Shown piece after piece: positions 4,050-14,242 of a DNA stretch of 64,000 nucleotides. Numbering within the stretch: position 1 is the first letter of the stretch; the number at the start of each line of letters is the position of its first letter. Below the pieces are notes generated by a model that saw only the letters and a program-made list of their open reading frames with translations, did not search any database and was not told the origin of the DNA. The DNA is from Amoeboaphelidium protococcarum X5 (Eukaryota > Fungi > Aphelidiomycota), in assembly GCA_023515725.1 (NCBI GenBank), contig JALDTO010000206.1:62001-126000 (forward strand). The letters are read 5' to 3'. The position numbers and the translations under genes were made by a program.

Positions 4050-5220
4050 ATAATGCTAGCTGTATTTATTAGCTTCACTTGATACTTTACTCTAACGTAT
4101 TTCAATGTCACAAACGCGGTGTAATTGAGAGACTGTTTGAGCAGAAAACTTTCGAGCGCTTGATACTTATACAGTAGAGGAATTGCGTACTACCGATTTT
4201 TACTCTCAATTTAATGAGATGGAAACGGCAAACCGCTCGCCCACAAGTCCCTTTCACACAGTAATCAGCAATGTGGGTCTGATCAGAATTCCTAATCAGA
4301 TTCCCCTTTCGTATTTGCTCTGAAAATTGCGAAGCTGTCAATACTGTGATTTCAGTGCTGCATGACAGTCACAAAGTTCCCGCTTGCTACATGATAACTG
4401 TGCTTCCGTAAGAATGCTTCGATACATCCCAATTCGCGAAGATCAGCGAGCCAAATCAGCAGTCATTGACAAATCCTACACGTATATGGTTATGAACAAT
4501 TCTAGACAGACAAAATGTAAAACTTGACCTTCGTATTAGCATTTATTGATTTCAGACATGCGTACAAGTAGAAGAAACTAATGAGAAGAGAGAAAATAAG
4601 TGCTTAAATATCGCAGCGCCAGCGCAAGATCAAACTGGTCGGTGATGAGATCATTGTTCGCATCACTCAAACGTAGTGATACTCTAGGACAGACTATAAA
4701 CACAATAGGAACAGACGGGAAGCTATATACAAAGATTAAGAGTCAAACAGAGACACCAACAGAAGTACAGGAAGATTAAACATGTTAATAAGATAAATAC
4801 TCTATTAACACGTTAAAAGTTGTGCCTTATGACTAACCGCGTCGACAGTAAACAGTAAAACAGTATAAAGCGAGAGCGCGAGAGGAGGAAGAATGAAACG
4901 CGCTCGTGTCGATAATACCAATGACAACGACGACACAAACGCTGAAACAATTAAACACTGAGATCTTTATTCCCCACTCACATCCACTATTATTTATTTA
5001 GTGTAGAATAGGCTTCGGAATTCTAACAAGGCCAGCAATCTGATATAAAAAAGAACTCATTTTTAGAATAACTACGAGACATGATGGATAAGTGGTTGAA
5101 GATTAAGCCCAAAGCTGTGACTGGTGAGGAACCACAACAACTGGGCGCTGAGAAGAAAAAGGATGGTCGCGGTGGGGCTAGACTTAATGCCGGTAGGAAG
5201 AAGAAGATTGTGGAGGAGCC

Positions 5221-5259
5221 AAGGCAGGGCAGGGCCTGCCCTAACCCTGCCCCTGCCTT
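5221..5259. repeat. GC-rich imperfect inverted repeat (hairpin)
   Basis: AAGGCAGGG-CAGGG pairs with CCCTG-C-CCCTGCCTT around the loop CCTGCCCTAA. Confidence 0.7.
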
Positions 5260-5359
5260 GCCTACTACTGCTGTATGTAAGCAGTGGCAACTTGAAATGA
5301 GTATAAGTGTCTTAATATTCCTTTTCCGAAATTAAAAGGTAAGAAATAATATTAGAGAA

Positions 5360-6909: not shown

Positions 6910-8100
6910 ATGATCTCGGCATTGTAAAGGGTATTCGTTGTTGCGTTAGCGGTTGGCGTGTCTGTGGTGTGTGGTCGCGAGATCACATCAATGGATGAGA
7001 AATTGACCATATTCAATAATCTGAGCTAGAAAAATAGAGATCAAGTAAAGAATCCAGAAAATATCTGTCTATATACTGCATTTGGGCCGACATTCATGGG
7101 AATCAAGGAGCAAGTGGCTTACCGATATGAAACCCTTGAGAAAATATCTTAAGGCGCGTATGGCGAAGTTTTCAAGGCAAAAGATCATTGCACAGGGGAA
7201 CTGATCGCGCTCAAGATTTTCAGAAATCGAGACCAAGACGAGATCTTGGATTTGACGCAAGACACCCCGCAGGGCCTCCACACTCCAGAGTACGTCAAAG
7301 AAGGATGGCGGGAATATAGTATTGCGGGAAGCGATTTGGTTGCAGGGAATGCACATTGTGTTCATGCTATAAATGCTTATGAGTTCTCTGATTACTTTGC
7401 CATCACTTATCCTCTGTTCGACACAAGCTTAAAAAGCTATAACAAGAATTTCCTGAGTACTTTGGATTGCGATGATGCTTATAGACTTATAAAGTCAGTG
7501 ACGCGCCAGATCTTGTAGTGCTTGAAACATATTCATGATCGTGGTCTAGTACACAACGATTTGAAACCTGGTAATGTACTCATCTCTGGAGATCCTTACA
7601 ATCCTTTTGTTGCAGTGACAGACTTTGGAATTTCTTGTTACACGTAGGACTGTGAATGGAAACGTGTTACTCCTTGGTATGAGGCTCCTGAGATTATATA
7701 GTATGGGCGTGGAAATGTATAGAGTGATATTTGGTCGCTAGGGGTGATAGTGGCTGAATTGTTTCGAGCTAAGCCAGTATTCAGTGTCGAATTGAGTTAT
7801 CTCTCATAACTGTATGCCGTTGCTTGCTTATCAAATGATTTTCTGATGAAAGCTAGAATAGGAAATCAGTTGCGTGTGCCTCAGCTGAAACGCAAGTAGT
7901 TTGCATAAGCCTATGGGGTGGATCCTATTGAATACATGCAGCGTGGACTTGATCGAGTGCTTTATCGAAAAGAAGCACAGCTCTGTCATAATCAATTGTA
8001 TGAGTAGATGCATACCTTCGTGTAAGGCTGCCTGAAGTTTTATCCACAGCTGCGCTTAGATGCTCAGGCAGCATTAGAGAACCCATTCCTGGAGTTTTGA
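6910..8100 (+). CDS. Signal-peptide-bearing DYRK-like Ser/Thr kinase (copy 1)
   Basis: N-terminus MISALQRVFVVALAVGVSVVCG; VAYRYE, QGAYGEV, KDHC, ALK, HNDLKPGN, DFG, WYEAPE, DIWSLG, final NPFL then TGA. Confidence 0.9.
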
Positions 8101-8394
8101 TTAAACGATTGGTCATTCGATATTAATAGCTATACCACCACCATGAATGCAATGAAGAATTTTTAATACTGTTAAATGCAAATATTTTAATTTAAAATTG
8201 ATTTCCCTTTAAACTATGCGAATCACAGCTGTATAATTCAGTAGGATGTATCGTGAGCGCATGTGATTTGAGGCCTGAACAAGGGGGAACAGCACCGGCC
8301 TTACTGCGGACTGATCGCCGATGGCTTTTTCTCATTTTTACACGACTAGGTAATTTATCCCGATTATTAAATTTTTATCCTGCTGATATCACGG

Positions 8395-9633
8395 ATGGAT
8401 TGGCATGCGTTAGTCTTGATACTAATGCTGTTGTGGGCGTACGTGGCTAATGCTGGTACGGCTGTTTTCTCAGAAGAGATGAAAATGAGCATTTTTACAA
8501 CTCTAACTCCTCACTACTAATCTCAGGTGAAAAATCATGCCAATATCTGCTATTACGCTGATCACCACCCAACATTCGAAAATCTGCATGAATAAATTGC
8601 TTTCCGATATGAAACTGTGTAGCTCTTATCCTCTGGGACATATGGTTAGGTTTATCGCGCGATTGACCATTGTACTGTGTAGTGGGTAGCTTTGAAAATA
8701 TTTAGAAATCCACGCAAAGATAAAAGCAAGCGAGAGCCATAATTTTATTTAACAGATGGTCAGAATGAGTATAAATTTGCATCCAGTCTTGCTGTTAGAA
8801 GCAGTAGTCATTGTGTGCCGGCATTTGATAATTACTGGTTTGAAGACTTTTACGCTATCACATATCCTCTGTTTAGTACAGATTTGGTGACTTATAATAG
8901 ATAATTCCTATCAAGAATGAGCTGTGATGATACATTTAGAATTACTCAATCTGTCACGCGTCAAATCTTGGATTGTTTGGTGTCATTACATGCAAGCGGC
9001 ATTGTTCATAATGATTTGAAACCTCAAAACATTCTGATCACTGGTCCTATTGATAATCCTACAGTAGGAGTTACTGATTTTGGGCTATCTTGCACTGAAG
9101 ACTAATGTGACTGGCATAGAGTCACCCCCTGGTACGAAGCTCCAGAAATCATTTAAAGCGGTAGAGGTAATGATCGCAGCGACATTTGGTCTTTGGGAAT
9201 GATTGTTGCTGAACTATATAGATCGAAGCCTGTATTTTCATTCGTTTTGCCTGATAAATTCTAACTACTAGCTGATGCATTCATGACTGATCACTCAATC
9301 ACTCTGGAATCCATTTTAAATCGGTAGATTGATGATTAGGAGCTTCTAGATTTTGCCTAGTAAAATAACTTGCGCCCTCAGGCTCTTTATAATTACTTGT
9401 CGCGACCGTTAAAAAAGGCAATGTATAGACAAAAAAGTGATTAATGTCGTGATGCTCCATTTGACGATCTGCTTAGTTTTGTATAGGAATGTCTGGAGTT
9501 TAATCATTACTTTAGGCAAAGTGCTGTTGAACTTAGTATGCACCCTTTTTTGTTGCCCGATTCCCCGCTTTAAAATAATTAAAATTTACACTACGTAGAT
9601 GGTTAGATGATTTAGAATTCAGAGTAACAATGA
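8395..9633 (+). CDS. Signal-peptide-bearing DYRK-like Ser/Thr kinase (copy 2)
   Basis: N-terminus MDWHALVLILMLLWAYVANA; IAFRYE, SGTYGQV, IDHC, ALK, HNDLKPQN, DFG, WYEAPE, DIWSLG, HPFL. Confidence 0.9.
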
Positions 9634-9873
9634 AAAGTTTCGTAATAATAATATAATAGATTCAGAGACCCCTAGTTTAATTCCTCCTTTTAATGACTAC
9701 ACTTTTTATAAACTGAATTCACCAGGGGTCCTCTGCGGCCATGTGTTTATGTGTGGCGTCGGAGACCCCCAAATTCAAAATTAAAAGTCCGCGTAAATGA
9801 CTCATGTTAGTAGGCTGCAACGCCATTTATTATCTGAATAATATTTTTAATAATGCAGTGGACGTCCTATACA

Positions 9874-11109
9874 ATGAAGCTATACGTGTTATTTGGTCTC
9901 ATTATCGCGTTTTAAAACGTCTTGTTTGCTAGACAAATTTCTGACAATGAAGAGCGAATGAGGATTTTCCAAAGCCTGTCGCAGCTTGAATAGACACAGG
10001 TTGAAAGTCCACAGAATATCTGTTATCACTCTGATTTGGTACAAACTTTCATCAGGCCTGAAGAATCTATAGCTTATCGCTACTAGATTACGAAATTGAT
10101 TGCTGTAAGACCTCATGCCGTTATTGTTAAGGCATTTGATCATTGCACTGGCATGCTGGTTGCGCTGAAAGTGTTCCCACGGGTGAAAGACGAGTCAATT
10201 AAACAGCAACTGACGCGTTATGATCAATCCTTGTATTAGGATGCGAATTTTTGGTATGGCTTGCGGGAATTCAAGTATGCTGCATTCGCTACCACCCTGT
10301 CTTAACACTGTGCTGGATCACTAAAGAGTTACCTGTTTGTATCTAACTACGCTATCGTATTCCCTCTCTTTGATGGCAGCTTGTAGAACATGATTGGTAT
10401 GAGATGGCCAAATGGCCAGCAAGATATAGCGACGGTGTAAGAAGTCCGCGATGTGGCTCATTAAATCCTTCAATGTCTTCAACCGATGCATCTGGGCGGT
10501 GTCGCGCACAATGATGTGAAGCCTGATAATATCCTTCTACGAGTTGGCTAAAATAGTGCGCGAATAAATTTCTTTGCACTAGCAGATTTTGGACTCTCGC
10601 ATGGTGACGCTCTGGACTGGCCTGGTGAACCATGGCACCGTTCTACAGAGGAATATGAAGCTCCGGAAGTCCTACTTGATCGTCAAGGTTCAATCTAAAG
10701 CGATATGTGGTCTCTGGGTATGACGCTATTCTATCTCTTCAGTGGTAAACTTTTGCTTAAGCCCTATCCAACTGATATACAGCGAATGATCGCGCTCCCT
10801 CTCATAACAAAAGATCTCAATGATCAATAATTTGATGAATATCAACACACGCTGCAGGTTCGCTTCAAGAATGATTATAGTCTTCCTGAGGAGCAGTTTG
10901 CATTAATATACGAACAAGTGGCCAGCGACCCGTTTTTACAAGCGTCTATTGAAGAGATACTGGATCCTACAGGGAAATATCTAAATGATGCCAGCTTTGT
11001 CTAAATGGTGGACTTTATTAGCAAGTGCCTGAAGTTGAAGCCTAAAGACAGACTTACTGCTGAAACTGCTCTACAACACCCATTCCTTACTACAAGCCAT
11101 AGCGACTGA
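9874..11109 (+). CDS. Signal-peptide-bearing DYRK-like kinase (copy 3, degenerate Gly loop)
   Basis: N-terminus MKLYVLFGLIIAFQNVLFA (alternative ATG at 9853); IAYRYQ, FDHC, ALK, HNDVKPDN, DFG, EYEAPE, DMWSLG, HPFL. Confidence 0.88.
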
Positions 11110-11329: not shown

Positions 11330-14242
11330 ATGATGATACTCTAAAGGTAGAAAATTATTACACTTGGTCGTAGAGCAGTTCCTTCAATTGCTAGTTATAA
11401 TGCAAGAAGATTCAAGTCTGGGAACGATGGTATACAGAAGGCTCTATCGATAATAGAGAATGCAGTGACGAATGTTAATGGCGGTGCAGGCGGAAAGAGC
11501 AAATTACCGCGTGAACTATTGGCTCTTCCTGTTAATAACAGACCTCTATTCCCAGAATTTTTTAAAGCCATAAGTATTAAGGATAAGAGTCTTATTAAAT
11601 GTGTCCAAGATAATTTGAAGGCGAATAATCCGTATGTGTCTGTCTTTCTCACTCGTACACCAGCTGAGCAGTAGATGAATTAAGACGAGGACTAATCATC
11701 ATCATCATCATAGTAACAATATAAACAAGGGGATCAGAAGGAAGTTAATATTTCGCGATAATCTGGGAAAGGTAGTTTGGAAATTAGATCAAGTGATGTG
11801 ATAAGGTCGATTGATGATATTCATCCCGTGGGTGTTGTGGCACAGATTTTCAATGTTCTTGCTGAACCAAGTGGCTCAATGACTCTATTGTTATATCCTA
11901 TGAAGCGTGTCAAGATGGAAAAGTTTATCTCACCGCAGCGTCTCTCAAAGAGCTCAACTGAATTATCATCTGCTGTAAGTGATCAGAAGGATGACGACTA
12001 ATCTCCGGCCACTGACGTTAAATCGTTGAGTAGCAAATTTAAGACAAGTTGTGCCAAAGTTGTTGCTCTATAATTATAAGACGAGCCATTTGATATGAAA
12101 GACTCTGAGATTTAGTAATTGAGTAGAGATATTGTGGCTACTCTGAATGATATGGCCAATTTAAATCCTCTAGTCCGTGATCAAGTTTCCGAATTTGTAC
12201 GTGGTATGTCTGTCAGTGGCTCTTTTAGTCAGAACGGAGGAGTGGATGGAAATGGTAATAGCAACCTGGCTGGTGTATTTAATGAGGATGACTCGTTAAA
12301 GTCAGATGATCCTAATATTCAGTTGACTCAACATCCATCAAAGCTTGCAGATTTTGCCGCCGCCATGTCTGATGTTCCTGGCGATTAACTGCAATAGATT
12401 CTGGAGACTACTAATGTCAAATAGAAGTTGGAATTGTCCTTTAACGCCATAAGAAAGGAGATGAGAAATGCAGAGTTGCAAAGTAAAATATCTGCAGATT
12501 TAGAACAACTGATCAGTGACAGCGATCGACAAGCATTCCTTCACAAGAGGCTGAGAAATATTTAGAAAGAGTTGGGCGTGGAGTCTCAGAGCAGAGATAA
12601 AATTATGAATAAGTACCGAAAGAGAGTTGAGGGTCTGAATATGCCTGATTATGCCAAGAAGGTATTTGAAGAGGAAATGGGCAAGTTGAATGTACTTAAA
12701 CCGTCTGCGTAAGAGTATAATCTGACTAATAATTACTTGGATTGGATCACATCGATTCCATGGGGTAAAAGTGGCAAAGATTCCTATTCTATTAGTCGCG
12801 CCTTGCAGGTTTTGGATGAAGATCATTATGGACTAAAGGATGTTAAAGATCGGATCCTGGAGTTTGTAGCCGTTGCCAAACTGAGGCACAGCATTGAAGG
12901 TAAGATTATCTGTATGCAAGGACCGCCCGGTGTTGGAAAGACTTCGATTGCTAAGAGTATTGCCAGAGCTTTGGATCGTAAGTTTTATCGGTTCAGTGTC
13001 GGAGGTTTATACGATGTTGCTGAGATTAAAGGTCATCGACGAACGTATGTTGGTGCCATGCCTGGCAAGTTGGTTCAGGCTCTAAAGAAGGTGCAGACTG
13101 AAAATCCGCTTATTCTCATTGACGAAATAGATAAAGTTGGTCATGGTGGAAGTCAGGGTGATCCTGCCAGTGCGTTGCTTGAAGTGTTGGATCCAGAGCA
13201 GAATAACACGTTCATGGATCATTACATGGATATGCCATTGGACTTGTCTAAAGTCCTGTTCGTGTGTACTGCCAATGTGATGGACACTATTCCGGGTCCT
13301 CTATTAGATAGAATGGAAGTTATACAGCTAAGTGGGTATATCGCTGAGGAGAAGATGTAGATTGCGCAGAAGTATTTGATACCACAAATTTTGAAGCAGA
13401 ATGGTGTGTCTGAGGATCGAGTTCAGATTAGAGAGGATGCTTTGCGTACACTCATGGATTAATATTGCCGAGAGAGTGGTGTAAGGAATCTGAAGAAGCA
13501 CCTGGAGAAGGTGGTCAGAAAATCTGCTTTGCGTATCGTTCAAGGAGAGGAATCGGTAAAGGTGGATGCGTAAAACTTGAAGTCTTTTGTTGGCAATCCT
13601 GTATTTTATAGAAAGCAATCAGTGCCCGGAGCCAGCAATGTCGGTGTAGTGACTGGACTTGCTTGGACCGGCATGGGTGGTGACACGCTCACTATAGAGT
13701 GTCTTGATAAGTCGTTACCTGTACGCAATAGCGCTGTATCAGATAGTTTTGACAACAATACTACTAAGAATGGCGGCAGTTCTGCTTACATCAAATTAAC
13801 TGGACAACTTGGCGATGTGATGAAAGAGTCTGCACAGATTGCATATTCATACGCGCAAAAGTATATCCAGGACCGAGAACCGCAGAACTTATTCTTTGAC
13901 AAGGCATAGATCCATCTACACGTACCTCAAGGTGCGATCAAGAAAGATGGTCCTAGTGCTGGAATTACAATGTGCTCTGCATTGTTATCGCTAGCCACAG
14001 GTAACCCAATTCCTACTGATGTTGCCATGACTGGAGAACTGACTCTGACCGGTAAAGTGTTGAAGATTGGCGGAGTGAAAGAGAAGATTATTGCAGCCAA
14101 GAGAGATAACATATAGACTGTGTTGCTTCCGAAGGAAAATGCTGCCGATTGGACTGTTCTGGACGATACTGTAAAATAAGGTGTAGAAGTGCACTTTGTA
14201 GATTCGTACAAGGACGTTGCCGATATACTTTTCAGCCAATGA
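11330..14242 (+). CDS. PIM1: Mitochondrial Lon protease
   Basis: Basic presequence, [23 protein letters not shown], Walker [22 protein letters not shown] (catalytic Ser), IGGVKEK. Confidence 0.97.

Follow-up and report, generated by a model that had tools for sequence, protein, structure and literature searches.

What kind of protein is encoded by three neighbouring protein kinase genes that begin with hydrophobic N-termini, when CMGC kinases, the DYRKs among them, reside in the cytosol or nucleus and rely on one-time tyrosine autophosphorylation? The genes, here called K1, K2 and K3, lie in a window of 64,000 nucleotides (contig JALDTO010000206.1 of assembly GCA_023515725.1, positions 62,001 to 126,000) from Amoeboaphelidium protococcarum X5, so that the algal parasitoid of the aphelid group that the original prediction had supposed as the source was correctly recognized. 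That prediction, made from the letters alone, proposed a family of secreted, DYRK-derived effector kinases. Comparisons of sequences and of a structural model showed the triad to be of class 2 DYRK descent, DYRK2-like, and its products are likely to enter the secretory pathway; the best, though tentative, explanation is that they are secreted kinases acting on host proteins. The genes are as follows.

6910..8100, + strand: K1 gene, 396 aa under genetic code 6; public protein P0008; homeolog KAI3637883.1; Pkinase match at residues 73-394, E 2.7e-37.
8395..9633, + strand: K2 gene, 412 aa under code 6; public protein P0013; homeolog KAI3637882.1; Pkinase match at residues 72-386, E 6.5e-34.
9853..11109, + strand: K3 gene, 418 aa under code 6; public protein P0131; homeolog KAI3637881.1; Pkinase match, E 1.2e-30.

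Each gene is an intact single open reading frame (ORF) running from ATG to TGA, in agreement with the initial description of three co-oriented, intronless paralogs of about 400 aa, and their pairwise identities are 44, 30 and 28%. The frames contain internal TAA or TAG codons (12 in K1, 21 in K2 and 12 in K3), and long ORFs appeared in the window only under code 6. Such codons also occur inside nearly all of the 135 Pkinase matches in the 23.6 Mb assembly, and the three public proteins are identical to the window at all other codons and have Gln at every TAA or TAG, which together indicate that code 6 applies (TAA/TAG read as Gln) and that the genes are not broken. Pseudogenes were ruled out on these grounds and by the dN/dS ratios given below. 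A bacterial or viral origin found no support, as bacterial matches were generic (25-31%) and the GC content of the triad is in line with that of the neighbouring genes. The family is not invisible in annotation, as had been thought, since GenBank already lists all three genes under code 6 as hypothetical proteins. Our first searches were run with stop-free pieces of the sequence, and later ones with the public proteins.

The derivation from DYRK kinases proved firmer than first claimed. The best sequence match in the PDB was DYRK2 both for the K1 homeolog (E 4.6e-25, against 4.7e-20 for CDK6) and for K3, and when the PDB was searched with a family profile, DYRK2 and DYRK3 alone passed E<=1e-30, with a best value of 1e-42. 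A region with the pattern F..L...QV...NIC and an AYRY start are common to K1, K2 and K3. This region had been noted as a shared pro-region (F..L....QV....NIC); it is indeed present, but it is no separate pro-region, corresponding instead to the N-terminal module of DYRKs.

6979..7116, + strand: K1 N-terminal DYRK module, with two helices (a probable NAPA1 remnant), a DH-box-derived segment with a family-specific Cys (NIC), and a NAPA2-like end.

The 21 residues before AYRY matched the metazoan-type DYRK2 DH box ungapped and in register, with its N..Y..D spacing (0/20000 permutations). The match of the family to this genome's own DYRK2 was reached in 86/20000 permutations and that to DYRK1 in 317/20000, and no significant register match was obtained against Yak1, CLK or eight control kinases. 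The two upstream helices best matched NAPA1, again ungapped (p 0.07), and hhalign gave no significant result for them. In DYRK2 the N-lobe is stabilised by NAPA1, the DH box and NAPA2, which pack against it (PMC3677093). The simplest reading of the sequence and the model is that a signal peptide was joined to NAPA1 and that about 20 residues were deleted between NAPA1 and the DH box. Because the shared region would be this DYRK cap, a special export motif behind the leader is unneeded, and we set that candidate aside.

An AlphaFold model of mature K1 (predicted local distance difference test 88.5, predicted template modelling score 0.89), whose input alignment contained DYRK rows, had DYRK2 as its top Foldseek match. 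Residues 1-374 of this model aligned with NAPA-containing DYRK2 structures (3k2l, Z 30.1, root-mean-square deviation 3.5, 329 residues aligned), whereas CLK and DYRK1 structures, which tie with these in Z, aligned only from about residue 35. The best Atlas shapes for K1 were dual-specificity kinases covering the same cap, one of them named DYRK4-like, and Atlas feature searches returned only generic matches. In a maximum-likelihood tree, six family copies formed a clade (100/99) within the DYRK/CLK clade (100/99), on long branches.

Orthology to a widespread housekeeping kinase, which the original prediction had named as evidence contrary to itself, was excluded, as canonical DYRK1, DYRK2, Yak1 and CLK genes all persist separately in the same genome, with HCD or HTD motifs; none of the canonical kinases fetched from the genome has a comparable leader. 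The genome's own DYRK2, whose two exons were scored apart, has an intron inside NAPA1, and the triad is intronless. A truncated receptor-like kinase was likewise rejected, since the receptor-like kinases form a separate clade in the tree and the triad's upstream neighbour is an S4-domain gene, which runs on the opposite strand.

If these are DYRK descendants, which parts of the kinase have they kept? The Pfam PF00069 matches of the three proteins scored 107-129 bits (cut-off 31.7), and none of the 12 copies departs from the catalytic Lys, alphaC Glu, Asp, Asn, DFG or APE. The claim of a complete kinase domain stands for these core residues and fails for K3 in that it lacks the Gly-rich loop; K1 and K2 have a partial form of GxGxxG, SxGxYG, in which the first Gly is Ser.

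7126..8091, + strand: K1 kinase domain, with the ALK Lys, alphaC Glu, HNDLKPGN, DFG and APE all present.
7621..7692, + strand: K1 activation segment, without the YxY tyrosine and with both CMGC arginines replaced (TP, YEAPE); it has a Cys pair common to K2.
10102..10125, + strand: K3 degenerate Gly-rich loop, residues 84-91 (IAVRPHAV), with no glycine and the same in four haplotypes; the Pfam match begins at profile position 14.

HCD has become HND in all 12 copies, the YxY autophosphorylation tyrosine (position counted from APE) is Lys or His, and the two CMGC arginines (SRxYRxPE), which in DYRK structures hold the activation-loop tyrosine, have become Pro, Glu or Gln and Glu, respectively. 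Class 2 DYRKs need this tyrosine in its autophosphorylated form (PMC3250476). Its disappearance together with the residues that bind it suggests that the kinase works without an activating phosphate and that its P+1 pocket has been rebuilt, and the proline-directed specificity of DYRKs is probably altered by the rebuilt P+1 loop. K1 and K2 are probably active. K3 may be an atypical kinase or a binding partner, possibly a pseudokinase; WNG1 of Toxoplasma is active without a Gly loop (PMC6442604). HND (as HNDIKA.N) is also found in seven of the genome's receptor-like kinases, which the tree places well away from the triad, so HND arose more than once in this genome.

Whether the proteins leave the cytosol depends on their leaders.

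6910..6975, + strand: K1 leader, residues 1-22; h-region 8-21; cleavage site, with V/G at -3/-1, placed by rules.
8395..8454, + strand: K2 leader, residues 1-20, with an A-N-A cleavage motif; the second Met, M11, is replaced by Ile in one X5 haplotype.
9853..9930, + strand: K3 leader, residues 1-26; weaker than those of K1 and K2, with I18N in the remaining three haplotypes.

The best 10-residue Kyte-Doolittle means of these leaders were 3.08 (K1), 3.05 (K2) and 2.78 (K3); of the window's 25 remaining long ORFs, one membrane protein reached 2.49 by the same measure and the rest were at or below 1.79. No further 19-residue segment above 1.5 was found in any of the three proteins, bearing out the report of a hydrophobic N-terminus and no further transmembrane segment. 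The residues at -3/-1 (V/G in K1, A/A in K2 and L/A in K3) obey the cleavage rule. Across four haplotypes the leaders contained no indels, in comparison with 15 gap columns in the 120 bases upstream of K2 and K3, and the pooled leader changes were 12 synonymous and 12 non-synonymous, where 23% synonymous were expected (p 0.004), an excess driven by K1 and K2. Because of this lack of indels and synonymous excess, the leaders are most likely translated. Hydropathy, cleavage-site residues and codon constraint thus agree in making them signal-peptide-like, and we consider entry into the endoplasmic reticulum (ER), followed by leader cleavage, a likely prediction.

How widespread is the family, and how is it evolving? 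A homeologous copy of the triad, 90% identical in DNA, lies on contig C155, and both haplotypes of a second assembly, whose MP228 locus tags we take to denote strain X5, carry the triad as well. In that assembly it is flanked by the same genes as here, namely the S4-domain gene and, downstream of K3, a Lon protease gene (11330-14242 in the window). On the window's contig, a second Lon-like DNA match (72-74%) was observed about 20 kb upstream (C205:50471-51750). The spacers between the triad genes have no sequence in common, which indicates that the duplications are old. Apart from the triad, a profile search found the N-terminal cap at only one pair of places in the genome, C98:1195115-1196272 (+) and C249:216220-217326 (+); this fourth family pair, known from profile matches only, is colinear over nearly its full length, so that the family comprises four genes per subgenome, the triad and one dispersed pair. 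No close relative outside the species was found among 5.8 + 1.84 billion proteins and metagenome contigs, in searches that were word-limited or made with one piece and so may miss distant aphelid kin. A Logan contig from run SRR845265 included a 947-base K2 fragment with 99.4% identity to the C155 copy.

Natural, unbroken frames of the window were compared under code 6 with those of the three other haplotypes, yielding dN/dS values of 0.155-0.157 for K1, 0.23-0.25 for K2 and 0.17-0.19 for K3, and of 0.05-0.15 for neighbouring genes. The triad genes are functional and under purifying selection, evolving slightly faster than housekeeping genes. Positive selection was not seen, and a ratio near or above 1 in the K2 cap region rests on one or two synonymous changes.

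Two insertions distinguish haplotypes at this locus. In one haplotype of the second assembly, an insertion of 7 kb (contig JALECJ010000020.1, 11370-18330) lies between K1 and K2, at the site that corresponds to 8258-8276 of the window. It has four ORFs under code 6, which encode a PIF1 helicase, a Pox_A22-like Holliday-junction resolvase and two proteins without an assigned family; no terminal repeats were found, and the window's own assembly contained only short matches to it (84-95%). It looks like an unclassified mobile element. A composite repeat of 1.1 kb at 4183-5274 of the window is missing from the other three haplotypes, and consists of two multi-copy parts split by a 140-base element with more than 30 genome copies, many of which are paired about 5 kb apart, as in long terminal repeats.

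What, then, would these proteins do? The best explanation, at which we arrive with a little less than even confidence, is that they are secreted kinases acting on host proteins. In this order of events, the aphelid lineage would have acquired a second copy of a class 2 DYRK (DYRK2-like) gene, with a signal peptide fused straight onto the N-terminal NAPA1/DH-box module. The copy would then have dropped the tyrosine-autophosphorylation switch (the YxY tyrosine, the two arginines and the HCD cysteine), gained conserved cysteines, and grown to four genes, of which this tandem array holds three. Their products would enter the ER and lose the leader, and the resulting soluble Ser/Thr kinases, needing no activating phosphorylation, could pass from the cyst, the infection tube or the intracellular amoeba into the algal cell and phosphorylate host proteins there with the host's ATP. 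Aphelids enter through an infection tube, become an amoeba within the algal cell and engulf host cytoplasm (PMC3975115). As the amoeba feeds on this cytoplasm, anything that it secretes would meet host proteins and host ATP.

Several observations weigh against this explanation or its premises. Approximately unbiased tests did not reject the tree that unites the family with DYRK2 (p 0.14) or the one that forces it out of the CMGC set (p 0.15). The K3 leader taken alone is near neutral, with no synonymous excess, and the I18N change falls in its h-region in three haplotypes. A Met stands just past each leader (K1 M28, K2 M29/M31, K3 M36) and could start a cytosolic form. The extra cysteines suit a lumenal or extracellular site better than a reducing host cytosol, although ROPKs also carry a disulfide (PMC3682881). 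Moreover, a DYRK2 of the non-parasite Oikopleura dioica also has a leader, and so a leader alone does not imply an effector. Finally, the family is small and its selection close to that of its neighbours, unlike a rapidly diversifying effector family; the idea of an effector kinase family is therefore weakened, with only four genes per subgenome under purifying selection, although the tandem paralogs are lineage-specific as predicted.

The strongest competitor, which we nevertheless consider somewhat unlikely, is that the kinases reside in the secretory pathway or outside the cell and act on the parasite's own exported proteins (in the cyst wall, the adhesive, the infection tube or the vacuole surface) and not on the host. 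CotH/Fam20C-type kinases phosphorylate exported proteins in this manner. The same leader evidence would serve such kinases, as would the small, conserved family and the leader-bearing HND DYRK2 of free-living Oikopleura. The cysteines are also in keeping with it: five are invariant across K1, K2 and K3, three of these being new relative to DYRK2, and two more pairs are kept in K1 and K2 and lost together in K3, a pattern that hints at disulfides. A precedent for parasite-directed activity is provided by WNG1, which acts in the vacuole lumen of Toxoplasma and has lost the Gly loop as well (PMC6442604). On the other hand, no ER or Golgi retention signal was seen at the C-termini and no second transmembrane segment in the proteins, and three diverged paralogues with differing C-lobe surfaces suggest several targets.

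It is quite improbable that the leader is an uncleaved anchor with the kinase facing the parasite cytosol, or that a downstream Met gives a mainly cytosolic form, making these lineage-specific intracellular signalling kinases. The in-frame Met right behind each leader would allow this, the K2 n-region has a net charge of -1, the K3 h-region is short and polar-substituted in three haplotypes, and GenBank models of two K2 copies (P0002 and P0011) start at M11, halving the leader. However, M11 is not conserved, being Ile in another haplotype, which makes the first Met the likelier K2 start; cleavage-site residues are found in all three proteins, the leader codons are constrained, and in K1 and K3 the positive charge before the h-region, with no net charge after it, favours a lumenal C-terminus. 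Very improbable, lastly, is a ROP5-like role as secreted pseudokinases or scaffolds, binding proteins of the host or the parasite but catalysing nothing, for although the first loop Gly is Ser in K1 and K2, K3 has lost the loop, HND is non-RD and no activation-loop phosphosite is left, the catalytic residues are invariant in the 12 copies, across paralogues only 28-44% identical, and WNG1 is active with its Gly loop missing (PMC6442604).

No description of secreted DYRKs, of aphelid secreted kinases or of aphelid secretomes was found in the literature searched, which did not include the genome paper. We know of no traceable ancestor of ROPKs and FIKKs; if a DYRK2 offshoot kept the folding cap, lost the switch and acquired a signal peptide, secreted kinases would have a new route of origin, and one whose ancestor can be traced. 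Aphelids crash algal mass cultures, and to our knowledge almost none of their effectors have been characterised. The four defined genes are testable candidates for the parasitoid's host handling or for the building of its infection apparatus.

Compared with class 2 DYRKs (human DYRK2/3/4 and the genome's own DYRK2), the K family has the same eukaryotic protein kinase (ePK) fold, AYRY start, ALK.F.N, DFG.SC and CMGC-type C-lobe, as well as the DH-box-derived segment and NAPA-like N-terminal cap, and these are its top matches by sequence, profile and structure. It differs from them in its leader, in HND for HCD, in lacking the YxY tyrosine, in a TPWYEAPE-type motif for SRFYRAPE, in having lost about 20 residues from the stretch linking NAPA1 to the DH box, in being intronless and, for K3, in the missing Gly loop. 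The K family descends from DYRK2 yet fails three defining DYRK features: HCD, YxY and the CMGC arginines. The aphelid receptor-like kinases (Mikhailov et al. 2022, as cited in PMC10608142) occur in the same genome and some have HND, but they possess long N-terminal regions and form their own clade far from CMGC.

The Oikopleura dioica protein (CBY07823.1/E4X6M4; P0132/P0143) resembles the K family in being a class 2, DYRK2-like kinase, in starting with a hydrophobic leader and in having HND for HCD, but it keeps the activation-loop tyrosine, the arginines and a long N-terminal spacer. It joined the aphelid clade at only 61/37 support; its leader is probably convergent, and it is possibly an independent secretory-pathway DYRK of the tunicate. 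A candidate relative comes from another aphelid, Paraphelidium tribonematis, whose very divergent 417-aa protein Partr_v1_DN26755 (P0158, from the EukProt transcriptome) has a leader, D.CT and xND motifs and a CMGC-like fold. Its cap helix, IF..(L/M)S..EQ..V, resembles that of the K family (hhalign E 0.002, against 0.3-0.8 for controls; 9/2000 shuffles), and its union with the triad was not rejected (p 0.33). It differs in its long, unplaced branch and in APL for APE; no DH-box match was found in it, and the triad is not its first match in this genome. A common origin of this protein and the triad is plausible, somewhat short of an even chance. Unlikely, in our view, is the broader proposal that an aphelid-wide family of exported, phosphorylation-independent kinases, with the signal peptide on DYRK2 common to Paraphelidium, is delivered into the algal cytoplasm and reprograms host phosphorylation; effector kinases would then have arisen in the sister group of fungi independently of the apicomplexan ROPKs and FIKKs.

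It is well established that parasites use secreted kinases as effectors (PMC8893276, PMC3682881). Like the ROPK, FIKK and WNG kinases (PMC3682881, PMC8893276, PMC6442604), the K family is a lineage-specific set of ePK-fold proteins of an intracellular parasite, equipped with leaders and arranged in tandem loci, with an N-terminal extension lying on the N-lobe, co-conserved cysteines and one member without a Gly loop. No ROPK, FIKK or WNG kinase was among its top PDB sequence or structure matches, and no WC motif was found at the end of alphaF. In contrast to these families, it has another ancestor (DYRK2) and belongs to another supergroup, has 4 genes rather than 20-50, and its secretion is predicted. 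By analogy, the K family may work like the ROPK/FIKK/WNG class while standing outside those sequence families.

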